Shown: piece by piece, positions 11,740-55,786 of the stretch | Numbering within the stretch: position 1 is the stretch's first letter | Layout: each line of letters opens with the position of its first letter | Sequence record: MT028491.1 | DNA length: 64,000 bases | Reading direction: 5' to 3' (one strand) | Translations under genes and position numbers: made by a program | Notes under the pieces: model-generated | What the model was told of the DNA's origin: nothing | Seen by the model: the letters and a program-made list of their open reading frames with translations, nothing else | The model's database searches: none

Positions 11740-12285
11740 TTAGTCAAATGTAAAATTAGAATTTTCTAACATAGCGATTTCGTGGTTTAATCGAATGACT
11801 CTGAAAATGTCAACGATCATATATGGATCAGTCAATTCGATACTAACAAATGGGAGTGTTCCATTCTTGAAATGAAAACATGCATCAGGTGGCTTGTTTT
11901 TATCGATATGTTCAATGAGTGTAATTTTTCTAAAATCACCAACGCTACCCCATTGATATTCATAGTAGTAACATGCCGCCATTGAATGAGACGCATTAGT
12001 TAATCTAAGTTCATAGAATGCTGTAGTCAAATACTCCCTTCTTAGGGTAATAAGAGTATCATGAGGATTCTTACTAATAACCCTCTCTAATCTTAGAAAT
12101 GGATTTGAAATTGGAATTATTCCTAAATTACTATTTGTCACCTTTTCACGTGTAACATCCGTCACGAACAAATGTCTAATATCAATATGATAATTGCCAC
12201 TAGCTGTTTTAACAAAAGGATGTTCAAGATCGTCATACTTGACTAGCAAATCATATAATTCGTCTACTGGCGTTTTCTTTTGCAT
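11740..12285 (-). CDS. orphan protein, C-terminal FxxIxxxH family
   Basis: ends IFRVIRLNHEIA... Confidence 0.65.
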   Translation of the reverse strand: MQKKTPVDELYDLLVKYDDLEHPFVKTASGNYHIDIRHLFVTDVTREKVTNSNLGIIPISNPFLRLERVISKNPHDTLITLRREYLTTAFYELRLTNASHSMAACYYYEYQWGSVGDFRKITLIEHIDKNKPPDACFHFKNGTLPFVSIELTDPYMIVDIFRVIRLNHEIAMLENSNFTFD

Positions 12286-12748
12286 ATTCCAACCTATGAT
12301 TCATGGCAATTATATTAAACATCGAATTAACTGACTGATACCAACATGAAATGTTCTTATAAGGGTCTTCCCATTCTTTTATGAGTCTTGCCGTCTTATA
12401 TTCCTTGTCCATATGTATTTTGATAAAATCTTTATCATTAATAAATGTAAGGGTTTGGGATGTTGGCTTAACTGTAAGGTGAATGCAGTCCGCCACAAAA
12501 AATGAATTTTTCTTGTGTTTCATATTAAGATCACTTTGGAAAGTAAAATGGGATTTCCAAAAGGATGTTACACTCTTCATTTCTTGTGAAACCGATAATT
12601 CCCTAATGTCTGCATTGGTTATCTTAAAAAACTCTGTAAAGAAACAAATGAACAAATCATGACCAACCCCAAGATGTGTACCTGATAAAAGGCATGTCGT
12701 GGACCCGTAGGAGATAAATTCATTTTCTACTAAGTTTTCGATATTCAA
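12251..12748 (-). CDS. orphan protein, C-terminal FxxIxxxH family
   Basis: ends MFNIIAMNHRLE... Confidence 0.65.
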   Translation of the reverse strand: MNIENLVENEFISYGSTTCLLSGTHLGVGHDLFICFFTEFFKITNADIRELSVSQEMKSVTSFWKSHFTFQSDLNMKHKKNSFFVADCIHLTVKPTSQTLTFINDKDFIKIHMDKEYKTARLIKEWEDPYKNISCWYQSVNSMFNIIAMNHRLEYAKENASRRII

Positions 12749-12830
12749 AATCTATCTCCATCATGACGATTAAATGCATATCGAAGATACAACAAAATAC
12801 CAACAATTACAATAAAGAAAATGACGATAT

Positions 12831-13103
12831 TCATGTTATTCTGGATTGTAGGATACCAACAAAGAAGCCCAATGTAAGAGCCGCTTGATCGTATGATTCA
12901 AAATAATTGCCTGATTTGTATCTGGTAATGTCAAGATGATTTCCTGACCAGACAGATTGACCAATATTAAATGGACAATTCGAATTCGATATACTATAGA
13001 AGAAATAGTATGTGTTGCCTTCGGATGGAATTTTAACACTATCGAAGCTTAGGGATTCACTAATACCCTCTTCATCGATGTATTGATATGTGTCATCAGT
13101 CAT
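12831..13103 (-). CDS. hypothetical protein
   Basis: 90-aa ORF. Confidence 0.6.
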   Translation of the reverse strand: MTDDTYQYIDEEGISESLSFDSVKIPSEGNTYYFFYSISNSNCPFNIGQSVWSGNHLDITRYKSGNYFESYDQAALTLGFFVGILQSRIT

Positions 13104-13644
13104 TAGTTACCCCTAGATCGACACTAAGCTTATGTGCACCAATAATAAAGTTATAGATGTACATGTGAAACTTATATGTCTGCATTATTTCTGTTTCTTT
13201 CTCACCTTGTTTATCATTTTTGATCCAAGTTTGATTTCCAAATGAAGCCGTTTCATTTGTTACAACGAAACACAAAAATCTAGAAAATTTATTTTGTTCA
13301 AACATGAAATGAACTTCTTTGCGATCATTTATCCAAATTCTGGAAATATCACCAAGACCACACAAACTAATATTTTTACGCTCAAAACCAAATATGCCTT
13401 TTGTACAAACATTGAGCGTAAAATTATCAAATATGAGACTGTCAAGCGTGATATCCAAAACATATCCTTTTGGACTGGTGAATTGAAGAAGTTGCTTACC
13501 CTTATAGCTTGCTACAGAAAACGCACATCCCAAATTAACCAGCTTTCCCAATGCAGGAAGCAAGTTTAGCTCTTCTTTAAATTGTTCAAGCTTGGACATT
13601 GTTTGCCCATTTGATTGCGATTCGATTGAATTCCAATGTCGCAT
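13096..13644 (-). CDS. orphan protein, C-terminal FxxIxxxH family
   Basis: ends IYNFIIGAHKLS...; real start probably MSKLEQ. Confidence 0.65.
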   Translation of the reverse strand: MRHWNSIESQSNGQTMSKLEQFKEELNLLPALGKLVNLGCAFSVASYKGKQLLQFTSPKGYVLDITLDSLIFDNFTLNVCTKGIFGFERKNISLCGLGDISRIWINDRKEVHFMFEQNKFSRFLCFVVTNETASFGNQTWIKNDKQGEKETEIMQTYKFHMYIYNFIIGAHKLSVDLGVTND

Positions 13645-14038
13645 TGTAGACTTGCCGCATTTTTCTGTCCATGTGACTGACAGGGGTTTCCTTAACCCGC
13701 GTATTGCTCTTGATTGTCAAAACATCATGAGCCTGTGATTCAATCCAGATGCGACCAATGAAAATTTCATCATCTGGATTGCCATCATTTGCTTTATCAA
13801 CATCGTAAACGTCGATTCGAGACACCACATAAGAGCGGCCTTTCTTTTCGCCGTCATTATCCCATGATAATGAAAACCCGTTAGTGATTGGTTTAATTTG
13901 TGTGTCTGTACGAAAAACACCAGATGGAATATACAGACGTGCACCCAAATACGGAACGCATAGACCTTCAAAATTAAGGATATGGTTTACCCTCTTCACA
14001 TTGTCTATTTCTTTCTGCATATTCTCATTCATAAGCAA
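13586..14038 (-). CDS. orphan protein, probable divergent family member
   Basis: FSLSW internal motif; ends VYNATLEFNRIA. Confidence 0.6.
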   Translation of the reverse strand: MLMNENMQKEIDNVKRVNHILNFEGLCVPYLGARLYIPSGVFRTDTQIKPITNGFSLSWDNDGEKKGRSYVVSRIDVYDVDKANDGNPDDEIFIGRIWIESQAHDVLTIKSNTRVKETPVSHMDRKMRQVYNATLEFNRIAIKWANNVQA

Positions 14039-14177
14039 TCCTCATATATTTCTTTAAACGATGTTCCGGTGCTGTCTCTCACTGTCATCATGACAGATTC
14101 TATGATCTTTGAACATACATTTGGCAATTTGATTATCTCATTATCTACCATATCTTTAATCGATATGCAACCATCTG

Positions 14178-14510
14178 TCATATCTTCCCAAATACCTCTT
14201 GATGTGCTGTTGTATAAAGATGTGGAGATTCATACCTTCCTGACAAAACAAATGCCAATTCATCATATTCATAATCGTCACCATTCACATTGAAATAAAA
14301 CTGAATTTGTCTTTGGAGAAAACTTTCCAGACATCCAATAGCATGTAAGAATGTCAGATAATCGTAATTTTCAGGAATTTCAAATATGATGTTATTAATC
14401 AATTGATGTTCAACATCATATGTAAAAGAAAGACGACTGTTCCTTTCAAATCTCGATTCTACTAAATCAAAGGATGGAGTTGATTGTGTCGTGTTGACAT
14501 TTCGTGACAT
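14178..14510 (-). CDS. hypothetical protein
   Basis: 110-aa ORF. Confidence 0.55.
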   Translation of the reverse strand: MSRNVNTTQSTPSFDLVESRFERNSRLSFTYDVEHQLINNIIFEIPENYDYLTFLHAIGCLESFLQRQIQFYFNVNGDDYEYDELAFVLSGRYESPHLYTTAHQEVFGKI

Positions 14511-15550
14511 GATTTAATAACTCCTAAAAATTGTTCCGAATGTAAAGGCTGGTGCCATTTGTCATTTGATATGAGAAATAATTTTTTAGTTTTCACATTA
14601 ATTGCCATGCCGTCAACTATTTTATATTCCTGTGGCGATCTATCCCAACACTCATTATCGGAAACCCCAAAATAAGGATAATTTTGGATTAACCAATTTA
14701 TACGTTGATTTTCTGACTCCAACATCGGTTCGAAATAAAGATAATCTTCACTATGTTCGAGGTATGTGTCATATAGATTTAACAAACAATCTGGAATATG
14801 ATACAATTCGTTATCATTTCCCTCTTGTCTTAGATTTAAGTAGTTAGAACCGCCTTGCGAGCCACACACGACTTGTGCGAGCCTTTCACCAAAATATCTA
14901 CCATCAAATTCATTATCGATACCGATCCAATATTCGTTTTGAAGAAACCATTCGTCAAATTTCTCACTAAGATATGAAACACCTTCTCTCAAATAACCAT
15001 AAATTTCGTCAAGAAAGTCAATATAATTAACATTTGTTTTCATAGACATAATAGTTGATCCAGAATTGGAACTACGCGCATAGAGACTATTATTGTGAAT
15101 TCTATTGATTATTGGTATCCTTGTTCCTTCCACAAAATTTCCAACGTGATTTATGTGCTGTCCAAGGGATATTGTAGAATAACGGCACATAGGATTAAGC
15201 CAAGCATAAGGCAAAAAGAACCACTGATAGCGAGTTGAATCCACTGTTCCAGACTTTACATGTGTTTTATACCAGATGAATAAACCACCACGCGCATTAT
15301 CTTTCTTGAGAATGTTATATAGTGCCAAGTGTCGGTCTTCTACCGGTGGGACTGAATACCAGTTTTCTTTTTTAATACAAGAACCACTATCAGTTGTTGA
15401 AATAACGTTTAGAGAATTATTAGCACCGAAATATGCCAATTCCATATCATCAAGAGAAATAATGTTCGATAAATTATCACACACTATTTCTGATAGTTTT
15501 TCTACCAATTTAGCTTTGCGATTATAGTTTTTAAAGTCTCTTACGTGCAT
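14462..15550 (-). CDS. orphan protein, C-terminal FxxIxxxH family
   Basis: 362 aa; ends FLGVIKSCHEMS... Confidence 0.65.
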   Translation of the reverse strand: MHVRDFKNYNRKAKLVEKLSEIVCDNLSNIISLDDMELAYFGANNSLNVISTTDSGSCIKKENWYSVPPVEDRHLALYNILKKDNARGGLFIWYKTHVKSGTVDSTRYQWFFLPYAWLNPMCRYSTISLGQHINHVGNFVEGTRIPIINRIHNNSLYARSSNSGSTIMSMKTNVNYIDFLDEIYGYLREGVSYLSEKFDEWFLQNEYWIGIDNEFDGRYFGERLAQVVCGSQGGSNYLNLRQEGNDNELYHIPDCLLNLYDTYLEHSEDYLYFEPMLESENQRINWLIQNYPYFGVSDNECWDRSPQEYKIVDGMAINVKTKKLFLISNDKWHQPLHSEQFLGVIKSCHEMSTRHNQLHPLI

Positions 15551-16994: not shown

Positions 16995-17077
16995 TGGTGC
17001 GCTCTGCCGGAATCGAACCGGCACTCCGAAGAACTAGATTTTGAGACTAGCGTGTCTACCAATTCCACCAAGAGCGC
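16995..17077 (-). tRNA. tRNA-Leu(CAA)
   Basis: GCGCTCT acceptor, CT-CAA-AA loop, long variable arm, TTCGATT T-loop, A73-CCA. Confidence 0.93.
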
Positions 17078-17099
17078 TTAGATAATGTTTTGACACGAT

Positions 17100-17172
17100 T
17101 GACAACAACAGGGATCGAACCCATACATATCGTTTATCATACGACCGTTCTACCACATTAAACTATATCATC
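17100..17172 (-). pseudogene. degenerate tRNA-Ile(GAT)-like element inside a 22-bp inverted repeat
   Basis: D-like TAGTTTAATGTGGTAGAAC, anticodon arm GTCGT-ATGATAA-ACGAT, GGGTTCGATCCC T-arm; G:U-rich acceptor; no CCA. Confidence 0.6.
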
Positions 17173-17194
17173 AATCGTGGCAAAACATTATCAG

Positions 17195-17554
17195 TCAAGC
17201 ATCAATTGATATCATGCCTATAATTTTACCTGACAAGATCAACAATTGATTACAGGCATCATCATAATTCATATCAGCATATGTGTCTATCTTAAATTGT
17301 AGTTTCAATTCTTCTTGTGACAATTTCAAATATTCACAAATTAAACGTTCTGGAATACGCTGTTTCCTAATAAATTCGCCAAGATTGATTAATTCTCTTG
17401 ACAAACGGGAAAGTTGTTCTGCCCTTTCTGGATCATCTGGATAAAGGTCATTCCAAACTGTGTTATACCTTGCTTTAAACTTATAAAGTTTAAATGGCCT
17501 GACAGTCTGACCACTTGCAGATTGCAATGGTGTATAAACATTATTCCATTTCAT
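17195..17554 (-). CDS. hypothetical protein
   Basis: 119-aa ORF between tRNAs. Confidence 0.65.
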   Translation of the reverse strand: MKWNNVYTPLQSASGQTVRPFKLYKFKARYNTVWNDLYPDDPERAEQLSRLSRELINLGEFIRKQRIPERLICEYLKLSQEELKLQFKIDTYADMNYDDACNQLLILSGKIIGMISIDA

Positions 17555-17574
17555 ACTTTACCCCTTAACGAAAC

Positions 17575-17649
17575 TGGTCCTGATAGGTGGATTTGAACCA
17601 CCGCTATCTGCTCCACAAACAGATGTGCTAACCACTACACTATATCAGA
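17575..17649 (-). tRNA. tRNA-His(GTG), no G-1, A73
   Basis: TCTGT-TT-GTG-GA-GCAGA arm; TTCAAAT T-loop; ACCA end. Confidence 0.9.
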
Positions 17650-17650
17650 G

Positions 17651-17722
17651 CGCGCCGCCGGGGATTCGAACCCCGACTAACGGTTTTGGAGACCGTTGTG
17701 CTAACCGTTACACCAACGACAC
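17651..17722 (-). tRNA. tRNA-Trp(CCA), 3' CCA not encoded
   Basis: ACGGT-CT-CCA-AA-ACCGT arm, G73; 1 nt from tRNA-His. Confidence 0.88.
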
Positions 17723-17740
17723 ATTGTTTCATTGTAGTTC

Positions 17741-17748
17741 TATTTATA
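17741..17748 (-). promoter_or_regulatory. T4-like late promoter
   Basis: TATAAATA 19 nt upstream of tRNA-Trp. Confidence 0.6.
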
Positions 17749-17754
17749 ACAAAA

Positions 17755-18147
17755 CTACTTCTTTTTTACAAGACTCTTATCAAATTCAATTCGCCTATGT
17801 TCATCTTCGATAAAGATATTGAATGGCTTGTGAGTCTTTGCGAAATTCTCGCTACCAATATGTTGAGCCGCAATCTGATAGTATGCATTTTCAAATGCAC
17901 GATCTACCGCAATTGGACCGGGCTTGGTATCTGCTACAGCTTCCAAGGTAATTCGCTGGAACCATCCAAGGGCAATCTGCAAAGCCATATCTTCGTCTTC
18001 CATGACTTCATCAGCGCCGAAACTGTCATTTAGTTTGCGAAGGATGACTTCTTTGATTTCTGCATAATGCGCATCGGCAATCTTTTCCAATCGCGCAATA
18101 GCTTGCTCATTTAAAATGCGTTCTTCTTCTGGAATTTCATCCATCAC
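17755..18147 (-). CDS. hypothetical protein
   Basis: 130-aa ORF. Confidence 0.7.
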   Translation of the reverse strand: MMDEIPEEERILNEQAIARLEKIADAHYAEIKEVILRKLNDSFGADEVMEDEDMALQIALGWFQRITLEAVADTKPGPIAVDRAFENAYYQIAAQHIGSENFAKTHKPFNIFIEDEHRRIEFDKSLVKKK

Positions 18148-18167
18148 AAACCCTTTCTAATCACCAA

Positions 18168-18557
18168 TCAAAGGCTCTTGAAAATTTCCGTAGCCTTCTT
18201 ACCGTCATACTGATTTGGATAGGTTGCCTTCATGTACTTCATGAAATCGCCCATCGTCATCGTTTTGAACGTTTCTGCAACTGCCAAAATTTCATCATCA
18301 GAAAGCATCTTTGGGAGATACTTTTCCAATGCTTCAATTTCACCAGCCAAATCATCACTTGGCTTGAGTGTATAGGTTTCCTGCCAATTCTTATGAAGAG
18401 ATTTCAGAATAGTAACAACAGACGAATCATCAGACTGTTTATCCTTATCCAACTTGCGTTCAATTTCGCCAATAATTGTCTGATAAGTTACACCAAGACG
18501 ATGACCAATCTTTCGGGCTTCGTCACGATGTACTTTAATCTTCTCATAAATTGTCAT
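18168..18557 (-). CDS. GatB/YqeY domain protein
   Basis: YQTIIGEIERK...DDSSVVTILKS...EIEALEKYLPKMLSDDEI pattern. Confidence 0.75.
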   Translation of the reverse strand: MTIYEKIKVHRDEARKIGHRLGVTYQTIIGEIERKLDKDKQSDDSSVVTILKSLHKNWQETYTLKPSDDLAGEIEALEKYLPKMLSDDEILAVAETFKTMTMGDFMKYMKATYPNQYDGKKATEIFKSL

Positions 18558-18742
18558 ACCACATACTCCAATAGCTTGCGTTCATTATAAACTTCCGTTG
18601 CTTCACGATAAGCAACCATTTCCCAAGGTAATGTAGCAAGTTCCTCAATCTCTTGTTGCAACTTGTCCATGGGCATGGTCTTATAACCATTGATACGCGC
18701 TTCGCGCTCCCAAGGTCTTTCTTGATCCATTACACTACCCAT
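18554..18742 (-). CDS. hypothetical protein
   Basis: 62-aa ORF. Confidence 0.55.
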   Translation of the reverse strand: MGSVMDQERPWEREARINGYKTMPMDKLQQEIEELATLPWEMVAYREATEVYNERKLLEYVV

Positions 18743-18955
18743 TCAAAACCTTTTTGTTTTCTTGAGCCTATCAGACTCAAATCTAATTACCGATTTGATG
18801 TAACTGCCACTTTCCATGATGTCAACAGCCAGTTTATTCATCATTTCACGATTACACCTATGTCGAATGAAATCAGGTGGCGTATAAATCAATTTACCAG
18901 ATTCTTCATCCTTTAGATAAAGTCTCTTATTGATCTTTACAATTATCAATTTCAT
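18743..18955 (-). CDS. hypothetical protein
   Basis: 70-aa ORF. Confidence 0.55.
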   Translation of the reverse strand: MKLIIVKINKRLYLKDEESGKLIYTPPDFIRHRCNREMMNKLAVDIMESGSYIKSVIRFESDRLKKTKRF

Positions 18956-19410
18956 CCATTATACCATTCAATAGGGTGATCTTTCTCCCATTGTTTGGCG
19001 TCTTTTTGCGCCTTTTCTAGTCTTTCTTCAAAAGCTTTTTCTTCGGCAAGAAAATTCTCTAGTTCTTTTCTTGCATCGTCTATCCAATCAAAACGCATGA
19101 TGGTATCATAACCATGCCCAAAAACACCCTTCCAAATAAGTCTTTCTGGAATGAAAGCCCGTCTTAGTCCATTATCACTAAGAATTGCAGGTTCTGACTG
19201 CCAAGCTGGAACCAATTTATCATCCGAATCATAAAGTCTCTTATGAATGGTAAATGTTTGAGTCGTGCCATTTGGTTCAATGCTATAACGCCATTCTTCT
19301 CTAGGCTTATAAGGTGGAGAATATTTAAACCAATTATGAATCTTTTGCAGCAATCCATTCATCTTTATTTTGTTCTCCCCAAACCCGTTGCGCTTCCTCT
19401 TCCTTTTCAA
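18952..19410 (-). CDS. hypothetical protein
   Basis: 152 aa; FDWIDDARKEL motif similar to neighbour; real start probably MNGLLQK. Confidence 0.6.
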   Translation of the reverse strand: MKRKRKRNGFGENKIKMNGLLQKIHNWFKYSPPYKPREEWRYSIEPNGTTQTFTIHKRLYDSDDKLVPAWQSEPAILSDNGLRRAFIPERLIWKGVFGHGYDTIMRFDWIDDARKELENFLAEEKAFEERLEKAQKDAKQWEKDHPIEWYNG

Positions 19411-19792
19411 CAGATTCTAAATAGTCTTCTAGACATTTTCTAGCTTCCAACACAGTGTCAAATTCAGCTATCTTAAAGACATTTCCATATCCATCATTAC
19501 CATCGTTGTCTTCAATGAATTCATAATACCAAGTGCAATCGATCAGACGATATGAATCAACAATGACATTAGGGTTGTCGGAATACACAACTCTACAAAG
19601 AATAGAATCTGGATATCTATCATTATTATCATTATAATAAAGAATTTGATATTTTTTTAGAGCGACATTGGCTTTTAGTTTGTAATACGGTTGTATGGTT
19701 TTCTTTTTAATTGAAAACGGCTTGCCATTATCCTCTGGAAGATTGTCTTCTCCATTAAGAAGGTTTTTAATTTTCTGTATAAAATTAGTCAA
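19334..19792 (-). CDS. hypothetical protein
   Basis: 152 aa; FDTVLEARKCL motif; start TTG. Confidence 0.6.
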   Translation of the reverse strand: MTNFIQKIKNLLNGEDNLPEDNGKPFSIKKKTIQPYYKLKANVALKKYQILYYNDNNDRYPDSILCRVVYSDNPNVIVDSYRLIDCTWYYEFIEDNDGNDGYGNVFKIAEFDTVLEARKCLEDYLESVEKEEEAQRVWGEQNKDEWIAAKDS

Positions 19793-19862
19793 ATTTAATC
19801 CTTTATAAAATAGCTTTTAAGCATTTAAGAAACCCGCCCGATTGAGCGGGAAACCAAAAGGC

Positions 19863-20183
19863 TTAATCAAACATTCTAGCCTTTTCATCATCGGCCAAAG
19901 CATACTTAGAAGCCGCATAAGCGATATTTGGATTAACCGCCTTGCAATGACGATCATATTCAGAAGACGAATAATTCCAAAGCTTTTCGTCCAGAATGCA
20001 AGCAACAGACTTAGAAAGGCCCAAATCATTTACGGCTTTGCGAACCTTATCCGCCAGATAATGCGCATCGCGTGGATGATCGAAGATACCAACATGCATT
20101 GCAATTTCAAAGAAATATGCAAATGGTTCACGAAACGTAATCTGTACGCGATGCTTGCCATTGATGTTAATAACTTCGATCAT
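19863..20183 (-). CDS. hypothetical protein
   Basis: 106-aa ORF behind promoter near 20245. Confidence 0.65.
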   Translation of the reverse strand: MIEVININGKHRVQITFREPFAYFFEIAMHVGIFDHPRDAHYLADKVRKAVNDLGLSKSVACILDEKLWNYSSSEYDRHCKAVNPNIAYAASKYALADDEKARMFD

Positions 20184-20254
20184 TGTCTTAAACCTTGTTT
20201 TGGTTTGTTTTCGATGATTAAGTTATGCCATATGCTAAGAGTCTTGTCAACACC

Positions 20255-21415
20255 TTAGTCAATAAAATGCGGAACAAATCGCGAAGAATTCTTTGTAATC
20301 AAAGAGTCATCTTCTCGAATACCAATTCCAGCCGCTTGACCGGCAATAACCCAAGAACCAATAACAGGGAAATCATTCCCAAATCTTGGCAGTGGATTAT
20401 AAGCCTGTATGATATGCCCTTCGGCCCCATAAGGTCCATCATTTTTAAGACCTGTCTGGCCTGAAATGATTTCGATATTTGCGCCCTCGCGTGAGAAAAT
20501 AGGCTTGCGCACATATTCACCACCAAGGATTTTAACATCTTGCTCACCTTCAAAATAGCTTGGAAGAAGGTTTGGATGATCTGGATACATTTCCCATAGG
20601 ATCGGTAGAATACCCTTATTGGAAAGAACAAGCTTCCAAAGAGGTTCAATGATCGTGGTAGGTGTATCGATCAGATATTTGCCAAATTCTTCACGAACCA
20701 TATCTTCCAAAGGATAAAGCTTAAAAAGATGTTCGATTCGTTTGTCGTCTTTGTCAGTAAACCAATTTTGGGCATCGATACCAATTTCGGTAACATCCAA
20801 CATGACAACATCTTTGCCAATCTGATAGGCAATATCAGCTAGATATTTGATCGTTGTCCAATCTTCCCGCGAATCTTCGAAAGCTGCCAGATGCATAGTA
20901 TTGTAACCACTGGTGACGATATGAGGTAAAGCTTCCTTAAGCTTTTCGTGAATCGAATTGAATTGATCGGCATCAGCCGAAATCTTGCCCGAAAGTTTCA
21001 TATCTTCGAGCCACATCCATTGAACAACAGATGCTTCAAAAAGACTGGTAGGAGTATCGGCATTGAATTCCAGCATTTTTGCAGGACCATTACCATCATA
21101 AGCAAGATCGAAACGACCGTACAAATCCTTGTCTTTATTATTCCACGAGTCAATTACAGCATCGCGAAATTCTTCTGGAATTTGAAGTCTGGCCATTTCA
21201 TCAGGAAAGTCACAAACATAGGAAACGGCATTATAGCACATTTCCATAAGTTCGGTTGTAGGGTCTTCAATGTTGTTTTCGATTTCTTCCAACGAAAACT
21301 TGTAAGCGTTTCGTTCATCCCAATAGCGTTCACCATCAAAGGTGTGAAAGTCAAAGCCAATTTCTTCAACTTTCTTCTGCCAATCAGGACGTTCACCAAA
21401 CGAAATACGTTCCAT
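20255..21415 (-). CDS. glutathionylspermidine synthase-family ATP-grasp protein (YgiC/YjfC-like)
   Basis: LYGRFDLAY, KMLEFNADTPTSLFEAS, LFKLYPLE, EPLWK..SNKG, KPIFSREGAN, IGSW, IRED...FVPH. Confidence 0.92.
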   Translation of the reverse strand: MERISFGERPDWQKKVEEIGFDFHTFDGERYWDERNAYKFSLEEIENNIEDPTTELMEMCYNAVSYVCDFPDEMARLQIPEEFRDAVIDSWNNKDKDLYGRFDLAYDGNGPAKMLEFNADTPTSLFEASVVQWMWLEDMKLSGKISADADQFNSIHEKLKEALPHIVTSGYNTMHLAAFEDSREDWTTIKYLADIAYQIGKDVVMLDVTEIGIDAQNWFTDKDDKRIEHLFKLYPLEDMVREEFGKYLIDTPTTIIEPLWKLVLSNKGILPILWEMYPDHPNLLPSYFEGEQDVKILGGEYVRKPIFSREGANIEIISGQTGLKNDGPYGAEGHIIQAYNPLPRFGNDFPVIGSWVIAGQAAGIGIREDDSLITKNSSRFVPHFID

Positions 21416-21901
21416 TTATTTTACCTCTATGTTAACGTTGACTTTGTTTTTATAGTTATTCCAATATTTGTTGAAGCTATATTCTAAAATCTTTTCCATT
21501 TCTCTAGCTTCAATTTCAAATGGACATTCTTTATACAACTTAATGTTAAACCCATTTTTATCATAATATGGAGGTAAATTCGTTAGCGACAACCTTCCTT
21601 CAAGATATTGAATGAAATGAGTGAATTCATGAAATAGAATCTGTCTTAGTTCGCCACCATCCAAATATTTTGTATAGAATGGGCTTATGGAAATTTGTAG
21701 ATTGTTTGAATACGAATTCACCCAACCAAATTGACCATATGAATTACCAATATCTCGAAACGATAAGGTAATATGTTGATCTGTTTTAAGTTCATAAAAA
21801 TTGTAACAAAATATCAACGCTTTTTTCAACATGACAAGATTTTTGACAATTGTATTACTTGACTTTTTGTAATATGTTTTATCGATTAGAACGTCATTCA
21901 T
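21416..21901 (-). CDS. putative zinc metallopeptidase (HExxH)
   Basis: ILFHEFTHFIQ ... CPFEIEA; similar to 41766-42425. Confidence 0.65.
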   Translation of the reverse strand: MNDVLIDKTYYKKSSNTIVKNLVMLKKALIFCYNFYELKTDQHITLSFRDIGNSYGQFGWVNSYSNNLQISISPFYTKYLDGGELRQILFHEFTHFIQYLEGRLSLTNLPPYYDKNGFNIKLYKECPFEIEAREMEKILEYSFNKYWNNYKNKVNVNIEVK

Positions 21902-21907
21902 ATAACC

Positions 21908-22435
21908 TTAGCCCGCAACAGAGATTGCACGTGCACCGAAACCACCACGCGAAAGAGTAGTGGTACTAGTTGATGGTTTTGCAGCCGATGAATAACCAGA
22001 AATACGAACGCCACCAGTCTTATTACCAACATTTGCACCAGAACCAGTCATGAAATTGCTGGAATTGGTTGTACGATAAAGGCCCTGTGCTGGTGAATGA
22101 TAACCACCAGAAGACGTTCCACCAAGCATATAGCCCATCATGAACGGCATGAAAGAATTTCCACCGCTCGCATGAGTTGGCGAAGTTTGTTCACATTTTC
22201 CGGCACCAAATTCAGCTTCGCAGTCATCCTTTGACTTGTACGATGGACCGTTCTTTTCATGCTGTTTCTTAGCTTCTGCATAATTAGCTTCACACTGAGA
22301 ACGTGAATATTTGCCAGATTCGACACACGAATTGACATCGTTGTAGATAGCCGTATCGATAGGCTCTTCATTACAACCAGTGAGAACGACCGCCGCACCC
22401 ATAAGAGTTAGCGAAATCGCTAGTGAACGCTTCAT
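21908..22435 (-). CDS. DUF1190 (YgiB/YjfM-like) lipoprotein
   Basis: lipobox LTGC, conserved Cys pattern (SC..SQC..DDCEAEFGAGKC), FMPFMMGY, SRGGFG tail. Confidence 0.88.
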   Translation of the reverse strand: MKRSLAISLTLMGAAVVLTGCNEEPIDTAIYNDVNSCVESGKYSRSQCEANYAEAKKQHEKNGPSYKSKDDCEAEFGAGKCEQTSPTHASGGNSFMPFMMGYMLGGTSSGGYHSPAQGLYRTTNSSNFMTGSGANVGNKTGGVRISGYSSAAKPSTSTTTLSRGGFGARAISVAG

Positions 22436-22558
22436 AATGACTCCTTGTAAAAAATTAGTCTTAAATTCTGCATATTGCTTACCTTTGGACTAATATCTTG
22501 TCAAGGGTTTTATAAAAAGAAAATCACCCAAAACCTGTAGGTAATGGGTGATTAAAAA

Positions 22559-24277: not shown

Positions 24278-24300
24278 AGTGAAAATCCTAAAATAAAAAA

Positions 24301-24330
24301 ACGGTCTATCACATATTTATGATAGACCGT
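24301..24330 (-). terminator. intrinsic terminator with late promoter CATAAATA in its loop
   Basis: ACGGTCTATCA-8nt-TGATAGACCGT followed by TTTTTT on minus; CATAAATA at 24314-24321. Confidence 0.75.
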
Positions 24331-24336
24331 TTTAAT

Positions 24337-24746: not shown

Positions 24747-24822
24747 TGGTGGGTAATCTTGGTTCTGACCCAAGTTCTTCGGTGCTTCAAACCGACGCAT
24801 TGACCACAGTTGCTTATTACCC
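24747..24822 (-). tRNA. tRNA-Phe(GAA) with atypical T-loop
   Basis: TCGGT-TT-GAA-GC-ACCGA arm; T-loop GTCAGAA; GGGTAAT/ATTACCC, ACCA. Confidence 0.85.
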
Positions 24823-25368
24823 GTTTACTTCTATGTAGTGTCCGAATATAAGATAATTTAACAAACAATACAAGTATGTAAACTCAATATCGTTCCCTTT
24901 AAAAATTATCGGATAATTTCCTGTCCCTACATTATACATTGTGACAGTACGAAGATCGTTTGCCTTATTTACATTAAACCAGCTTATAACAATCCGCCTA
25001 TCTTTTTCATCGATTGTTAATTCAAAGGATTCATCTAATGTACCCTCATTCCTAACAACCAGCATATATTGAGACATATGCCTTTTGTACATTGCAAACC
25101 AATGGAATGAATTTTCATTCTTATCAGAATTGGTTTCTTCAATTTCGTTTGCACTGAAAACCTTTGCAGGGATAGAAAACTGATCAACCGAGTATTTAGC
25201 ACCCCATACATCGTATTTTTGTCTAAGTTTGAACAAATCGAAATGATACCATTTTGACTTAGTTGATAGAAAATTTGAATTTTTCATGTACTCTAATATA
25301 AGAGTACGCCTTTTATTCAAATCTTCAATATCAGTTAAATCAATACTGTCATCATTAAGATATGGCAT
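24817..25368 (-). CDS. orphan protein, C-terminal FxxIxxxH family; last codon and stop overlap tRNA-Phe
   Basis: IVISWF; ends LLNYLIFGHYIEVNG*. Confidence 0.65.
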   Translation of the reverse strand: MPYLNDDSIDLTDIEDLNKRRTLILEYMKNSNFLSTKSKWYHFDLFKLRQKYDVWGAKYSVDQFSIPAKVFSANEIEETNSDKNENSFHWFAMYKRHMSQYMLVVRNEGTLDESFELTIDEKDRRIVISWFNVNKANDLRTVTMYNVGTGNYPIIFKGNDIEFTYLYCLLNYLIFGHYIEVNG

Positions 25369-31977: not shown

Positions 31978-31978
31978 C

Positions 31979-43565: not shown

Positions 43566-44423
43566 CTATAACCCTAACAAAGCATCGTCCAAATCTGTTA
43601 GCATTTTGTGACTTTGATATATGGTTTCACCCAAACGCTGTTTGAATTGATTAGAATAATATTCGCCCAAACCGTACATAAGGAAAGTTCCGTTCATCGT
43701 AATTCCCATATGTTGCAACTTGACAAACAGTTTTGATTGTTTTTCGGTATGAAAAACACGATGATGTTTTGGGGATAGTTTAATTTGTTTGGGCGAATAT
43801 TTAATCCTGAAATTTTTCGGATTAAATGCATCAACAGACATAGAAAACATTTCACCAAGAAAGAAATATTTGATAGTTCCTTCCGGGTGTCTCATGTATT
43901 GTATGCCACTCCCATCACTCAAATTACTATGTGGCCAATGAGGTTTGTCGATGTGCCATGAAAACGCCAGCAATAATTGATACATAGTGATCAGATCACA
44001 ATGCACTCTATTATAGAGAGTCCCCATATCTTCAAGATCAAAGCCATTATTAGTCTTATCCCAACTGGTCACATCATTAACTATTACATTACCATTGCCA
44101 GTTTGATTGCTGGTATATGCAAGTAAGATATTGCTTGGATTAAATGGTAAACTGGCCTTATGCTGTTCTATGTAAAACCCATCTGCATTGATATAGATGG
44201 AAACATCACTACGACTGGTTGATATCTTAACAAACATCAATTCTTCAATGACTTCAAATGTTGAATTATTGTCAATGAAAAAATCAACTGTCTCTAAAAG
44301 AAACCATATCTTGCTGGTATCTGACATGTCTATAGTAGCATTCACACGCCGCAATATACCCTTACCATGCTTCAACAGCCAATGGGTTTCGGCAAAATAA
44401 TGAGCGCTTTCCATATGAGACAT
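43566..44423 (-). CDS. orphan protein, C-terminal FxxIxxxH family
   Basis: 285 aa; ends LGETIYQSHKML... Confidence 0.65.
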   Translation of the reverse strand: MSHMESAHYFAETHWLLKHGKGILRRVNATIDMSDTSKIWFLLETVDFFIDNNSTFEVIEELMFVKISTSRSDVSIYINADGFYIEQHKASLPFNPSNILLAYTSNQTGNGNVIVNDVTSWDKTNNGFDLEDMGTLYNRVHCDLITMYQLLLAFSWHIDKPHWPHSNLSDGSGIQYMRHPEGTIKYFFLGEMFSMSVDAFNPKNFRIKYSPKQIKLSPKHHRVFHTEKQSKLFVKLQHMGITMNGTFLMYGLGEYYSNQFKQRLGETIYQSHKMLTDLDDALLGL

Positions 44424-46403: not shown

Positions 46404-46982
46404 ATGGCTATCAAAGAGATTTTGACGGATGTAGAGCTTGTTGGTAAGGGCTTGCCAGCACGTGAAAATATCCAGCGTATTAATGAAAACTTCCAAGAAT
46501 TGTCCGGTGGCGGTGGAGAAACAACCCCCGTTGATTGGAACGATATCGAAAACAAGCCTGCATTTGGTACAGCGGCAACAACCAATTCAACCGCTTATGC
46601 TACAGCCGCACAAGGCACAAAAGCTGATACTGCCGTACAGCCTGCCGCATTGGATGCTAAATTGGATAAGCCATCTGGTGGAACGAATGCTCAACTCATT
46701 CGTGGTGACGGTTCTACTGTTGCAGCTTCCACTTATGCAACCGCTGCAAATTTGACATCTGGTCTAGCTGCAAAGCTTGACAAACCAGCCGGTGGAACAT
46801 CAGCACAATTGATTCGTGGTGATGGTACAACAGTTGCTTCGAATACCTTTGCTACATCAACACAAGGAACAAAGGCTGATAATGCGGTTCCAAAGACTGT
46901 AATTACGGCCCTTGATGCTGGTGAAACTGACCTAGCTACAATCGTCGCAAAGATCAATGAAATCATTGCAGCACTCGACTAA
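46404..46982 (+). CDS. head/whisker fibre-like virion protein
   Basis: VDWNDIENKP, QGTKADTAVQP, 2x KLDKPxGGTxAQLIRGDG; C-terminal DLATIVAKINEIIAAL trimer-like helix. Confidence 0.7.
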   Translation: MAIKEILTDVELVGKGLPARENIQRINENFQELSGGGGETTPVDWNDIENKPAFGTAATTNSTAYATAAQGTKADTAVQPAALDAKLDKPSGGTNAQLIRGDGSTVAASTYATAANLTSGLAAKLDKPAGGTSAQLIRGDGTTVASNTFATSTQGTKADNAVPKTVITALDAGETDLATIVAKINEIIAALD

Positions 46983-48136: not shown

Positions 48137-48393
48137 TCAACCTCTTCTGGTAGTTCGGAACGATTGACATAGAAACCATCAGCATCTTCTTTAATAGAAA
48201 TCATTTTGAATTCCTTGTTATTGAAGAATGCAATGAACGTTTTCTCTTTATCCACAATGATTTCTCTGATCCCGCAATGCATGATCAGATTTTCAAGCGC
48301 CAAAGAAAGCTTGATGTGTTTCTTAATGTCCATGACGATATTCTCCATAGATTGATTTTTCTCACTCTTAGCACGTTCTTTATAAATAGTCAA
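48133..48393 (-). CDS. hypothetical protein
   Basis: 86-aa ORF. Confidence 0.6.
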   Translation of the reverse strand: MTIYKERAKSEKNQSMENIVMDIKKHIKLSLALENLIMHCGIREIIVDKEKTFIAFFNNKEFKMISIKEDADGFYVNRSELPEEVE

Positions 48394-48454: not shown

Positions 48455-50338
48455 ATGGCAGACATGATTCGTATTAATGAATTGCCTGTATCCAATAATC
48501 CACAAAGAGACGACTTGATTCCTATCGATGGTGTTGACGGTACTAAGGCCGCTCAATTGGTTGACGTGGTTAAAGCCGGTACTGATCTAGCCACAGATAT
48601 TGAAGCTGTTGCCGGAACTAACACAACCAAAACAATGACTCCTTTCACAACCAAGGCGGCTATCGACGCTAAGGTTGATGGTCACTTTGCGCCTTCTACA
48701 ACCACAATCACAGTTGGATTTGGTATGCTTGGTGGCGGTTCGATTGCTAACAACGTTTTTATCAATTTCTCTCAACAGACAATTGACAGTCTAGCAAAGG
48801 CCGATACTGCCGCACAAGCTGCCGATGTTTCGGCGGCTATTGCTCCATTGGCATCGAAAAACTATGTTGATTCTGTAGCCTCTTCAAAGGTTGATAAGCC
48901 TGCCGATGGTAGTTCATCGAACCTTATTCAAGGTGATGGAAATACAAAACCCATTGCCGATTTTGTTTTGAAATCAGAAGGTGATTTGGTCAAGAAAACC
49001 GGCGATACAATGTCTGGCGAGTTGTCAAGTACAACATCTAATAATTGGCGAATTCAACACCCATCGTCTAACACATCCATGTTTCATCGTTATGATGGTA
49101 CTAATTACTACCTAATGTGTTCTGATACCATTGATGGAACTTTTAACACATTAAGACCTATTACAGTAAATTACACAACTGGTAAAACCACTATTGGAAA
49201 CTCACTTCAAGTTAACAATGGTGTTACGGTTGCTTCTGGTGGTGTAAATGTAACTAATGGTGATGTTAGAGGTAAAATTATTCACGATGATGGTGGTGGA
49301 TATCTAAATATCGGCTCTTATGGTTCCGAATACGGTTCTGGTTATAGTCGTATGTGGTGGAACCAGACTGCTAAAGAATTGTCTATTTGGGATGGTTCCA
49401 ATGGTAATAATGCTACTATAAAGGCATATAGATTTTCTGCTTCCAATGCTGTTTATGCTGGTAGTGCATATATGGCAACCGATGGTAATATTGCCGGTTC
49501 CGCTTGGACTGGTGGGAGTCTATATTCACATCTTGGTTCAACCGCTATGCGAGCTTATCCAAGACGTTCCGATGGTGGTGCAATGAACTTCTATTGGTCT
49601 GGCCAAAGTGGACAACCTACATGGCTTTGGGGTGGAACCGATGGAACTAATATGTACGTCTATAATCCATCTAACTTTTCTGTTAACTATGCGGCTTCTG
49701 CTGGTAATGCCAATTCTGTAGGTGGATGGACACAACCAACTATTTCAAACCAGATTGAAAGCCGTGCGGCTGCATATGCAGATGATAGAATTGCTAGAGC
49801 GGTTCTAAAGGGACAAGGCGATCAACGTATTGGTTATGGTGCCGGTGCTGGTACTGGTCAAGTTGGTATGTATATTGATATCAATAGTAACGGATACCCC
49901 CTTATCTTTACAGATCGTGGAACTGGTAGAGGTTCTATTCAAATAAACTCTAATAGTACAGTATATAATACAAGTTCTGATCATCGTCTTAAAGAAAACG
50001 TTCGTCAAATTGTTAATTATTCTATTGATATAAGCAATCTACCAGAAGCATTAGAAAGAATATTCAAGTATCGTTGGGTTGAATTCGACTGGATCGGAAC
50101 AGATGTCAAGAAATATCGTGGTATTATTGCCCACGAAGTTCAAGATGTTATTCCATTTGCTGTTGATGGTGAAAAAGACGCTGTTAATGAAGACGGAACA
50201 CCGAAACACCAGATGGTTGATTACTCTAAAATGGTTCCAGATGTTGGTGCGGCTGTACAAGAATTAACACTTCTAGTTCTCAAGCAAGCCGAAGAAATTA
50301 ATGAACTTAAAAAGAAAATTGAACTTCTAGGAAATTAA
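48455..50338 (+). CDS. tail fibre with C-terminal intramolecular chaperone (peptidase S74)
   Basis: LVKKTGDTMSG, SSDHRLKENV, GIIAHEVQDVIPFAVDGEKD, VDYSKMVP, terminal coiled coil; late promoter motifs at 48381-48412. Confidence 0.88.
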   Translation: MADMIRINELPVSNNPQRDDLIPIDGVDGTKAAQLVDVVKAGTDLATDIEAVAGTNTTKTMTPFTTKAAIDAKVDGHFAPSTTTITVGFGMLGGGSIANNVFINFSQQTIDSLAKADTAAQAADVSAAIAPLASKNYVDSVASSKVDKPADGSSSNLIQGDGNTKPIADFVLKSEGDLVKKTGDTMSGELSSTTSNNWRIQHPSSNTSMFHRYDGTNYYLMCSDTIDGTFNTLRPITVNYTTGKTTIGNSLQVNNGVTVASGGVNVTNGDVRGKIIHDDGGGYLNIGSYGSEYGSGYSRMWWNQTAKELSIWDGSNGNNATIKAYRFSASNAVYAGSAYMATDGNIAGSAWTGGSLYSHLGSTAMRAYPRRSDGGAMNFYWSGQSGQPTWLWGGTDGTNMYVYNPSNFSVNYAASAGNANSVGGWTQPTISNQIESRAAAYADDRIARAVLKGQGDQRIGYGAGAGTGQVGMYIDINSNGYPLIFTDRGTGRGSIQINSNSTVYNTSSDHRLKENVRQIVNYSIDISNLPEALERIFKYRWVEFDWIGTDVKKYRGIIAHEVQDVIPFAVDGEKDAVNEDGTPKHQMVDYSKMVPDVGAAVQELTLLVLKQAEEINELKKKIELLGN

Positions 50339-50341: not shown

Positions 50342-51985
50342 ATGACTACAATTCGAATTACTGAATTGGATAGGAATACTAGCCCTTCCAAAACAGATTT
50401 GCTTGCTACCGACAATACAACAACTGGAACAAGAGCATCTACTATTGAAGAAGCTGTTAATTCAGTTGTCAAGAAAGCCAATAATGAAGAGGCTGTAACC
50501 GGTACAGACAATACCAAATTCATGACTCCAGAAAGCACTAAGACCGCAATTGATGGTCTTAGTGTTCCTAAAACTCGCACTATTAGCACCACTTCTGATT
50601 TAACAGGTGGTGGAGCGCTTACAGGTAATTTAACAATTGGACTTTCATCTGGTGTAATTGCAAATTTAGCCAAAGCAAATACATCAGTTCAACCAGAACA
50701 ACTTGAATTAAAACTTGACAAACCGTCTGGTGGTACAAATGGAGATTTGATTCGCGGTGATGGTTCTCTTGTTGCGGCGAATACCTTTGCAACAAACACT
50801 CAAGGTGCTTTAGCTGATACTGCCGTTCAACCGTCTCAATTAACTGCATATGCACTCAAATCAGAAAATGATTTGAAGCTGGATAAACCAGTTGATGGAA
50901 CAGCTAACAACATCATCAAAGGTGATGGTACAATTGTAGAATTAAGCACTTTGGCAACTTCTGACCAAGGAACGAAAGCCGATAATGCTGTATTATTTAC
51001 CGGTCAAAATCTTACTGAAACACAAAAATCACAAGCAAGAAACAACATTGGTACAGACTATCTAAACCCATATAGAAACAAATTATTGAATGGGGGATTT
51101 AGTGTCGCACAAAGAGGAAATGGACCATTTACACAAAATGAATACACACTAGATCGATGGTACTTATTTAATGGTTCTGGTTCTGTAAATGAAATAAAAA
51201 GAATTAACACTACAACCAACGATTATAGCAGTGGAGTTCTTCCAAGATCAACACAATATAACGTTGAATGGAAGAGAAGTGCTTCTGGAACAGAAACAAG
51301 TTGGTTTGGCCAGCGTATTGAAGGTGTACATCATCTAACTGGTCGAAAAATTACTTTAACATTTTATGCCAAAGCTTTACAGCCAGTTAAACTTTTCCCA
51401 TACGTCCACCAATCTTTCGATAATGTTGAAGCTGATCCTCTATACACACCATTTCCAGATGTTAACATAACAACAGAATGGCAAAAATTTACTTATACAA
51501 TAGATTTACCGCTATCATTAAACATTGATACAATTGGTTATAATAGTTATGCTAATATTTTTTTCAACTGGTATAATACAGAACCAAATACAACTATAAC
51601 TATATCAAGAATATCCGTAGTTGAAGGTGATGCAACTTTAGAAAGTGATCCATTTTCACCAAGGCACATTCAACAAGAATTAGCTCTTTGTCAAAGATAT
51701 TATCAAAATTCTATTGTTAGATTTAAAGTTGGACAAACCCAAGTAGGACAGACATTTTACATAACTAGTCAATCCCTTCCAGTTGAAATGAGAATAATTC
51801 CAACAATCACTTCCAATAATCAAAGTGTGTTTACTCAAAATAATACGGACACTATAACAACATCATCAAATTTAATTGTGGCAATCACCGCGACCACAAA
51901 AACATTAAGAATTAACGGACAATACAACGGCGCGGGAAATACATCTGGATTTTCTTGTGATGTATTTGCTATGGCCGAATTATAA
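50342..51985 (+). CDS. tail fibre / receptor-binding protein with carbohydrate-binding-like C-terminus
   Basis: N-terminus similar to 48455; QNLTETQKSQARNNIG; RNKLLNGGFSVAQRG..TLDRW; ELALCQRYY. Confidence 0.85.
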   Translation: MTTIRITELDRNTSPSKTDLLATDNTTTGTRASTIEEAVNSVVKKANNEEAVTGTDNTKFMTPESTKTAIDGLSVPKTRTISTTSDLTGGGALTGNLTIGLSSGVIANLAKANTSVQPEQLELKLDKPSGGTNGDLIRGDGSLVAANTFATNTQGALADTAVQPSQLTAYALKSENDLKLDKPVDGTANNIIKGDGTIVELSTLATSDQGTKADNAVLFTGQNLTETQKSQARNNIGTDYLNPYRNKLLNGGFSVAQRGNGPFTQNEYTLDRWYLFNGSGSVNEIKRINTTTNDYSSGVLPRSTQYNVEWKRSASGTETSWFGQRIEGVHHLTGRKITLTFYAKALQPVKLFPYVHQSFDNVEADPLYTPFPDVNITTEWQKFTYTIDLPLSLNIDTIGYNSYANIFFNWYNTEPNTTITISRISVVEGDATLESDPFSPRHIQQELALCQRYYQNSIVRFKVGQTQVGQTFYITSQSLPVEMRIIPTITSNNQSVFTQNNTDTITTSSNLIVAITATTKTLRINGQYNGAGNTSGFSCDVFAMAEL

Positions 51986-54280: not shown

Positions 54281-54453
54281 GATTATTTCATCCGGCGCAA
54301 AATCTCTTTACCAGTCTTTTGGTAAAGTTTCTTCCAATCTTCCATTTCCTTTTTAGTGAATGCTTCATTCATCCACCAAAAAGCATTTTCATGTTCTCTT
54401 AATAGGCGATCATTATCCCATTTCTTATCAAATTTAGGTACTGGCATCAAACC

Positions 54454-54666
54454 TTAACAATGAACCTTTCTCACCAGTTTACCGTCTGTATAAGCTTCAA
54501 CTTCGGTAACTGTTTCATTAGGAAAGGCTGTATGAAATTCCTTTCCAGCTTCGTTAATAAATGTCGTTATGAATTCTCTTTCTGGTATATAATCAAACCA
54601 GTCATTCGAAATAGTAGTAGCGAACGACTTTCCATTCACCTTAATTTCGATATGCTTAATATCCAT
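54454..54666 (-). CDS. hypothetical protein
   Basis: 70-aa ORF. Confidence 0.6.
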   Translation of the reverse strand: MDIKHIEIKVNGKSFATTISNDWFDYIPEREFITTFINEAGKEFHTAFPNETVTEVEAYTDGKLVRKVHC

Positions 54667-54681
54667 AACGCAACCCCTTTG

Positions 54682-54909
54682 TTAATGAACTTTAGTCTTA
54701 ACTTTACTCGATTCGACTAAAGAACGCAAAGTTATTTCCGCATTCTTTATGTCGGTCTTAGCCTTGTGCAACTCTTCCAAAGCGTTTTCAAAATTCGATT
54801 CACGCATGATGCCGCGAACGTTTTTTATACGGATTTCAGCCCGTTCTAGGAATCTTGCAATTGGCATGTCACTTACCCCATCCATAATAAAAGTAAGTGC
54901 ATATAACAC
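54682..54909 (-). CDS. hypothetical protein
   Basis: real start probably MPIARF. Confidence 0.55.
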   Translation of the reverse strand: MLYALTFIMDGVSDMPIARFLERAEIRIKNVRGIMRESNFENALEELHKAKTDIKNAEITLRSLVESSKVKTKVH

Positions 54910-54914
54910 GAAAG

Positions 54915-55301
54915 TTAAATGAATGTCAATGGACCAGCAAAAACGAATAAACCGACATATGGACTAAGCACAATAGAATAAAAAAATTTACACAATACAT
55001 GCCCAAGCTGATCTTGATTGAACGTTATGTACTTGTCACATTTTGCATTATCCAATAGCCAATGACAAGACAATTCCATCATACCAAATCCCAATGCAAG
55101 AACATGGTTTCCGGTTGCAATAGCGACAATGATAGCCACAAATCCAGCATGAATAAAACAATGAGCAAACATTGCATGTTTCCAAGGAATAATCTCTTTT
55201 TCCTTGTGAGGATTTTTCTCTGTTGCCAAAATACCCTGTAACGGATAATCAGCCAAGAAATGAGCAAAAACGAACAGCAAGAAAATCTCAACCATAATCA
55301 A
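54915..55301 (-). CDS. DUF3307-like membrane protein
   Basis: AHFLADYPLQ..HCFIH..CHWLLDNAK..DQLGH motif pattern. Confidence 0.8.
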   Translation of the reverse strand: MIMVEIFLLFVFAHFLADYPLQGILATEKNPHKEKEIIPWKHAMFAHCFIHAGFVAIIVAIATGNHVLALGFGMMELSCHWLLDNAKCDKYITFNQDQLGHVLCKFFYSIVLSPYVGLFVFAGPLTFI

Positions 55302-55786
55302 CCCTCTAATGTTTCTGTGTGAATTTTTCTAATAGCTTGAAAAAATCCATTGGCTTCTTTTAAAATCCATGTTGAGGTTTCATCAAACGTCTTCATATCC
55401 GTTACCTGTATTGTCCCGTCCTTATCATGACCATGCCAATTGATATCGATTCTATTGTTAAATGAAACCGCACGTTGATTCCTAACAATATGTCGATATG
55501 ACATTATACCGTCTTTATAAACAGATAAATCAACATATATGTCAGCATCAAACCATTCCAGTTGAACAATATGTTCTGACTTAACCCCTATTCTCAAATT
55601 TTGAGCATTCAAAAAGGCATATGGGATAGTAATGTATGGGATATACTCAAAACCTTGATAAAAAAGTCCTCTTGGTGATAAGACAAATTTATCAGTATTG
55701 CTTATAATATCTCCCCATGGATCAAGACCGGTATGATACGCAAACGTCATACCGAACCTTCTTAACTGGTCTTTAGAAAACGTCAT
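55298..55786 (-). CDS. orphan protein, C-terminal FxxIxxxH family
   Basis: VQLEW; ends FFQAIRKIHTET. Confidence 0.65.
   Translation of the reverse strand: MTFSKDQLRRFGMTFAYHTGLDPWGDIISNTDKFVLSPRGLFYQGFEYIPYITIPYAFLNAQNLRIGVKSEHIVQLEWFDADIYVDLSVYKDGIMSYRHIVRNQRAVSFNNRIDINWHGHDKDGTIQVTDMKTFDETSTWILKEANGFFQAIRKIHTETLEG

Follow-up and report, generated by a model that had tools for sequence, protein, structure and literature searches.

A putative lineage-specific family of small proteins with a C-terminal histidine helix, tandemly expanded in Ochrobactrum phage vB_OspM_OC

Introduction

The hyperplastic early regions of T4-like phages are arrays of small non-essential genes that carry their own promoters and terminators. 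Tandem arrays of divergent small alpha+beta proteins are likewise found in the SUKH/SMI1-KNR4 polyimmunity loci, which have also been recruited by viruses. In jumbo phages, lineage-specific expansions have been described, among them a zinc ribbon present in ∼35 copies in Bacillus phage G (PMC7824862). Here we analyze a 64,000-nucleotide stretch of DNA (the window), identical (100% match) to positions 124001–188000 of record MT028491.1, the genome of Ochrobactrum phage vB_OspM_OC, and a group of small orphan proteins encoded in it that share a C-terminal helix with a characteristic histidine. The phage is a T4-like jumbo myovirus of 227,654 bp isolated from sewage (PMC7139368).

Our preferred reading, to which we assign a probability of roughly 0.6, is that these proteins form a lineage-specific, tandemly expanded family of small (about 150–185 aa), soluble, single-domain proteins. 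Eleven copies were identified in the window and at least 11 outside it, giving at least 22 in the genome, or about 6% of its genes. As such, the family is a case of a kind already recognized, the lineage-specific expansions of jumbo phages (PMC7824862). Like the zinc ribbon of phage G, it comprises many copies of a small domain in one large phage and is missing from relatives; unlike the zinc ribbon, which belongs to a recognizable superfamily, it matches no Pfam, PHROG, PADLOC or PDB entry, and its copies are too diverged for pairwise detection. With the hyperplastic regions of T4 the arrays share their strand, which is that of the replication and early genes, a neighborhood of tRNA and accessory genes, and short gaps that hold -35-like boxes and hairpin-plus-T-run sites and lack late boxes. 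The small early genes of T4 are mostly unrelated singletons, however, whereas a single family of roughly 22 copies is found here. The SUKH loci, which also consist of small soluble alpha+beta proteins in tandem, highly diverged paralogues, serve as a lead only: their conserved blocks differ, and none of the SUKH/Imm Pfam models matched any of 21 members at E values up to 10.

Occurrence of the C-terminal motif

The rest of the public MT028491.1 record was added to the window and open reading frames (ORFs) were called mechanically genome-wide. The original prediction had grouped 14 proteins of the window by a short C-terminal string; all 14 strings were confirmed, each in a minus-strand ORF with the low coordinate that it gave, and all 14 ORFs are annotated as 'hypothetical protein' in the record. 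For counting, the strict motif was defined as [FYLIVMW]xx[ILM]xxxH with the His no more than 16 residues from the C-terminal end. The bare string occurs 125 times in the 71,987 residues of the proteome, mostly in protein interiors, and such abundance would be expected if the motif reflected chance or composition, as an artefact of amphipathic helices at the C-termini of an AT-rich phage's proteins. The two clusters of the window are slightly AT-rich (GC 0.34–0.35 versus 0.37–0.40 elsewhere), and GC over the window as a whole is 0.34–0.40, compared with 0.49 in phiM12, which is among the closest relatives named for vB_OspM_OC (PMC7139368).

Against the artefact stand the counts themselves. Across the whole phage, the C-terminal motif was found in 19 of the 85 ORFs of 140–195 aa, where 2.5 are expected from the interior rate and shuffled sequences (n = 500) gave a mean of 2.7 and a maximum of 9; no excess was seen in smaller or larger ORFs or at N-termini. 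Inside the window the motif is carried by 10 of 28 ORFs of this size class versus 0.74 expected. Outside, where the test is out-of-sample because the motif was derived from the window, it is carried by 9 of 57 versus 1.81 expected (P = 1e-4). None of 63 size-matched ORFs of phiM12 has it. The comparison with shuffled C-termini that had been suggested at the outset thus places the motif well above chance, solely in the 140–195 aa class (19/85 versus ∼2.6). Given the excess in one size class, the replication outside the window and the 0/63 in phiM12, the motif is real and non-compositional. Together with the tandem clustering and the block 1 element described below, the motif excess and its out-of-window replication refute the artefact for the 11 core proteins of the window; it is the best account of three of the 14 proteins first proposed, and as an explanation of the whole set we regard it as extremely unlikely.

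Gene arrays and similarity of the protein bodies

Members are strongly clustered. Twelve family-family adjacencies were counted against 1.95 expected, and the maximum among 20,000 size-matched relabelings was 8 (p<5e-5). Beyond the helix, alignment revealed a second conserved element, [ILVM]-P-x3-[FLYM] (block 1), position-locked 103–127 residues before the C-terminus. It was found in 10 of 21 members, at five genomic locations, and in 1 of 64 controls (p = 1e-6); within the window 7 of the 11 members have it, the exceptions being p217, p218, p221 and p302. Two other candidate markers were rejected. The seven internal strands of the form h-x-h-x-W (h, hydrophobic; hereafter W-strand) quoted in the original prediction do exist, but as a loose pattern the strand is not enriched (10/23 versus 20/62 size-matched controls, p = 0.24), and a regular expression for block 3 did not separate members either (p = 0.16).

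When the last 28 residues were removed, the remaining bodies showed a weak yet significant likeness, scoring higher against each other than against controls (family-family versus family-control z, Mann-Whitney 4e-5), and a label-permutation test of body similarity, likewise with the helix removed, gave p = 0.006. Individual alignments are co-linear. The out-of-window member p027 aligns with p308 (42422..42898, minus strand, 158 aa), the most central member, over 110 residues at 25% identity (E 8e-4). Member p025, also from outside the window, aligns with p305 (40379..40831, minus strand, 150 aa) over 122 residues with an end point at the His itself, and the alignment of p363 with p338 (55298..55750, minus strand, 150 aa from the annotated start, a lone member that has all blocks) spans the W-strand. 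These co-linear pairs connect clusters up to 140 kb apart. In the alignments block 1 comes first, then two W-strands, the second often with an acidic/Lys turn after it, and last the helix. Member-to-member identity is 10–23%.

The C-terminal helix and its histidine

The C-terminal helix is ∼20 residues long and amphipathic, and the motif is its hydrophobic stripe. Counted from the His, positions -14, -11, -8/-7 and -4/-3 are hydrophobic in 75–100% of members and position +4 in 72%; a hydrophobic residue was never seen at position -6, where 14 of 20 sequences have Asn, Asp or Glu, and 65% carry Arg or Lys at +1. These column shares are slightly diluted by two mis-anchored sequences (p217 and p369). 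The His is the next core position of the heptad-like stripe, its mean angle to the hydrophobic moment being 38 degrees, and positions -6 and +1 lie on a common flanking face. It is present in 19 of 20 sequences and is replaced in p222 (13586..14032, minus strand, 148 aa; Asn in place of His, with block 1 and W-strand kept), as well as apparently in p098 and p099. Blocks 1 and 2 are retained in p098, and the tail of p099 resembles the helix.

Being on the hydrophobic stripe, the His would face whatever the helix packs on. Judged from sequence, this suits an interface, fold-core or pocket residue rather than an exposed docking residue, and we prefer to see in the C-terminal motif a determinant of the fold. 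A nearly invariant His next to an Arg or Lys, sharing a helical face with the polar position -6, could also point to a small enzyme in which the His and the adjacent basic residue are catalytic. We consider this quite unlikely: no other invariant polar column was found, the His itself is replaced in p222 and apparently also in p098 and p099 (in p098 with blocks 1 and 2 intact), and such low identity among roughly 22 copies in one genome would be unusual for an enzyme. Furthermore, no enzyme family was matched in Pfam, PDB sequences or Foldseek. With no transmembrane segments or signal peptides among the members, and with isoelectric points (pI) ranging from 4.7 to 8.9, the members have the appearance of soluble proteins in which the scaffold is conserved and the surface diverges.

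Predicted structure and fold comparisons

AlphaFold models were produced for p308, seeded with the 11 window paralogues, and for p338, seeded with 21 paralogues. The p308 model runs from a short N-terminal helix through a hairpin, a strand and short helix at block 1 and a beta-meander to a helix at residues 135–157. Five concordant models of p338 (pLDDT 60–64, pTM 0.48) follow the same order, with the helix at 127–149, and the helix is among the better-confidence parts of both single-chain models. The register of the second W-strand differs by one strand between the two proteins. A search for a common fold, as the original prediction had proposed, yielded two models with one secondary-structure order and no significant Foldseek match.

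Against the PDB, Foldseek returned nothing significant for either model. The leading hits of p308 were FABP-type barrels (E ≥0.19, best FABPs 0.2–0.5; TM ≤0.25, rmsd about 13), and a lipocalin/FABP (calycin) barrel was rejected at these TM values. The leading hit of p338 was 3rpx_C (C1QBP/p32; probability 0.80, E 0.31, TM 0.33–0.37, rmsd 6.5 over 98 columns); 3rpx was absent from the 50 best hits listed for p308. In BFVD, p308 found its own entry, at TM 0.41, and weak matches to jumbo-phage proteins of unknown function. The C-terminal half of p218 matched PF02121, which we take to belong to the helix-grip START/Bet v 1-type fold class, at E 0.0011 and 19.1 bits, under the cutoff of 21.3. Profiles of the START/Bet v 1/PITP helix-grip type were matched by none of the remaining 20 members, and no chain of these families was among the 50 best PDB hits listed by Foldseek for either of the two limited-confidence models. 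What the family appears to have in common with C1QBP/p32, START/Bet v 1 and FABP/lipocalin proteins is a size of about 150–180 aa and, in the models, a short N-terminal element, ∼seven antiparallel strands and a long C-terminal helix. Unlike C1QBP/p32, it is not uniformly acidic, and no member matched the Pfam family of those proteins. It may be that the fold is new, or that the models are not good enough to show what it is; we leave it unassigned.

Weighing common ancestry against a portable helix

A number of results count against descent of all members from one ancestor. The p-value for block 1 is optimistic because the pattern was chosen post hoc, from the alignment, and half of the members are without it. 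The body test also gave a high score to a beta-barrel-like control, so that its signal may partly reflect general beta-richness. The best pairwise E-values fail correction for about 210 pairs; indeed, all-vs-all BLASTP within the window and phmmer on the whole proteome found no significant pair among the candidates. Leave-one-out HMMs built from the bodies ranked 10 of 20 members in the top 7%, with no significant E-value. In hhalign comparisons of disjoint subsets or clusters, the C-terminal helix alone was aligned, at a probability of 5% or less; the all-vs-all HHalign check that had been envisaged thus recovered the helix and left the bodies unaligned. As for the models, one of the five for p308 reached pLDDT 74 and pTM 0.71 and the other four stayed at 44–47, BFVD's own p308 model agrees with ours at a mere TM of 0.41, and the p308 and p338 models are not independent, since they share alignment rows.

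Much of this would be expected if the bodies were unrelated and the helix were a portable element for docking, oligomerization, packaging or turnover that binds one shared partner. The helix is the sole region that profile-profile comparison aligned between clusters, its His is the sole nearly invariant column, the amphipathic stripe could equally face a partner, and block 1 is missing from half of the proteins. This explanation is weakened by the restriction of the motif to proteins of 148–201 aa, with other size classes unenriched and three longer carriers that look like chance matches. It is weakened further by the greater likeness of the helix-less bodies to each other than to size-matched controls, by the fixed distance of block 1 from the helix, and by the confidence with which the helix is predicted within both single-chain models. 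A portable targeting signal of the type of the T4 capsid-targeting sequence fits poorly, as it would be carried by otherwise unrelated cargo of varied size and enrichment of the motif is confined to 140–195 aa. We therefore regard a portable tag as unlikely. The shared docking or packaging signal of the original prediction is likewise disfavored, because the motif is size-restricted and a His on the hydrophobic stripe fits packing of the helix on its own domain.

For these reasons we favor a paralogous family. The ten members with block 1 are, with high probability, homologous, and the copies without it, which lie interleaved with block-1 members in the same arrays, are probably more diverged members. 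The proposal of an expanded, rapidly diversifying paralog family is accordingly retained, as an expanded paralog family, for 11 of its 14 proteins. The copies would have arisen by tandem duplication and diverged to their present low identity while the scaffold was kept. As suggested by the two AlphaFold models, one of moderate and one of low confidence, the helix would pack over an up-and-down beta-sheet that is twisted and has about seven strands, with block 1, an N-proximal strand-Pro-short-helix element, ahead of the sheet. With the helix predicted to pack on the sheet, the His and its flanking polar and basic residues would form a fold-core or pocket at the helix/sheet interface rather than a detachable signal, and the surfaces of the copies would differ, as their spread of pI suggests.

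Members and look-alikes

Members are about 148–201 aa long. The 11 in the window all have a C-terminal amphipathic helix whose stripe ends in His or Asn no more than 22 residues from the end, and all are on the minus strand. Besides the four already located, they are p217 (11740..12285, 181 aa, FRVIRLNH), p218 (12251..12748, 165 aa, FNIIAMNHR) and p221 (13096..13599, 167 aa from the annotated start, YNFIIGAHK), which adjoin p222 in the first array; p247 (24817..25368, 183 aa, with block 1, W-strand and His helix), a lone member within the tRNA block; and p302 (38876..39367, 163 aa), the first gene of the main array, with p303 (39357..39818, 153 aa, all blocks) and p304 (39838..40305, 155 aa, block 1 and His helix). 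Those outside the window are p024–p027, p097, p098, p363, p365, p366, p367 and p369. No broken members were found within the window. Outside it, the array at record positions 198–202 kb contains a family-sized locus (outer bounds 198786–199294, 169 codons) in which the body and the C-terminal helix are in different frames; it looks like a member with one frameshift, or a sequencing error.

Membership of the other three proteins first proposed is unsupported. These are p225 (14462..15550, 362 aa), which has the string, and p306 (40873..41769, 298 aa) and p312 (43566..44423, 285 aa), which have part of it, all on the minus strand. None matched the family profile (E 1.3–7.4), all exceed the length of the family, and their C-terminal 165 residues score no better against family bodies than controls do (mean z 0.02, 0.18 and -0.15 for p225, p306 and p312, respectively; control median 0.05). 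They are treated here, on sequence grounds, as chance look-alikes.

Several other sequences resemble members in part. A minus-strand ORF of 80 aa at 44647–44889 (annotated as p314, 61 aa) has an h-x2-I-x3-H string 3 residues from its end; as no other family block was found in it, it was left unassigned, and it could be a remnant or a coincidence. Among the controls, p190 (record 122900–123352) alone has block 1 where the family has it, and it ends in an amphipathic helix without His; p099 and p101 (28948–29436 and 30368–30844 of stretch L004 of the record), which lie beside members p097 and p098, have similar tails without His. In light of p190, p099 and p101 the family may exceed 22 copies, and the His is not indispensable. 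An iterated family HMM run on the proteome found no additional significant member.

Distribution

Searches beyond this genome found no relative. A search of p308 against 5.8 billion clustered proteins found only p308, and tblastn of three members against 50,697 phage genomes (E up to 10) found only the query genome. The family profile, run against 1.84 billion representatives, retrieved its 11 training proteins and nothing else; as it also missed 10 known out-of-window paralogues, this negative leaves room for equally diverged relatives elsewhere. Ten of the members from outside the window each form a cluster of their own, on one contig, and a locus search of IMG/VR with p305 found none. The family was not found in phiM12 (best HMM E 0.36), no recurrent family emerged from Pfam, PHROGs and PADLOC over all members, and a profile search of PDB sequences gave 0 matches at E up to 10. 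It is not described in the source paper for the phage (PMC7139368), which makes no mention of mass spectrometry, or in a jumbo-phage overview. The family appears to be real, undescribed and phage-specific.

Genomic setting and expression

Consensus scans found neither promoter-like nor terminator-like sites more often than in shuffled sequence, and the placement of the clusters behind early promoters, as originally predicted, is unsupported by these scans. A TTGAC(A/T) box, together with a hairpin plus T-run, is present both in the gap ahead of p308 (42899–42971) and in that ahead of p304 (40306–40378). In the first, at 42917–42960 on the minus strand between p309 and p308, the hairpin has 20 pairs and, with the T-run after it, overlaps a promoter-like site (TTGACA-18-TATAAA); ahead of p304, at about 40310–40370, there is a comparable stem and T-run. 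No T4-type late box was seen upstream of members. A late-type box, TATAAATA, does occur at 48381–48388, upstream of the tail-fibre gene at 48455 and 67 nt away from it. Early or middle expression of the members is plausible.

The tRNA block surrounding p247 extends over 16995–32718 with 22 genes found by ARAGORN, which missed a tRNA-Ala annotated in the record at 27223–27298. HNH endonuclease genes are interspersed in it at 27493–28188 (plus strand) and 30109–30642 (minus strand), the latter closely paralogous (3.5e-56) to p138, which lies outside the window. Two adjacent small genes of the block, p272 (31082–31417) and p273 (31420–31710), both on the minus strand, are weakly paralogous to one another (BLASTP 1.4e-4, phmmer 3.5e-5). 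Further along, three plus-strand genes of tail-fibre type (46404–46982, 48455–50338 and 50342–51985) have an N-terminal region in common (E 1e-4 to 2e-27), and one of the three, p326, has additional paralogues elsewhere in the genome. Outside the window, the five-gene array p023–p027 follows uvsY, which in phiM12 is directly followed by a gp3-like gene; compared with this shared T4-like backbone, the array looks like an insertion.

Genes related to ImmA/IrrE metallopeptidases lie near both window arrays. In the middle of the main array, p307 (41766–42419, minus strand) resembles p413 (phmmer 3.9e-5), which is annotated as an ImmA/IrrE metallopeptidase and lies at the end of the genome; p307 has no Pfam match of its own. 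A clear Peptidase_M78 protein (E 1e-13), p214 (10388–10858, minus strand), is encoded 0.9 kb from the other array, bringing such genes to three in one lytic phage. All three scored slightly high in some body tests. Kinship of the family with ImmA/IrrE was nevertheless rejected, as all three lack the helix motif and no member matched Peptidase_M78, the family of p214.

Conclusions

An anti-defence or host-takeover role, as the original prediction had it, is an inference. We tentatively suggest that the members may be cytoplasmic binders made before the late genes, each copy for a different host target or small molecule, in takeover of the host or counter-defence. It seems improbable, if conceivable, that they amount to a binding module of new fold, for ligands or targets, with its pocket between the sheet and the His/Arg-bearing helix; the array would then act as decoys or sponges, a counter-defence arsenal built on one scaffold with a separate host immune signal or effector for each copy.

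The family was missed by BLAST, phmmer and the depositors' annotation, and was revealed by a short C-terminal motif. Using a conserved structural helix as the anchor thus allows some of the orphan 'dark matter' in jumbo phages to be collapsed into families. At present the value of the finding is moderate, as it concerns one genome; its 22 natural variants of one scaffold nonetheless make up a defined set for structural work. Should the copies turn out to have different host targets, the family would offer a compact case of an alphaproteobacterial virus diversifying its proteins through tandem duplication.

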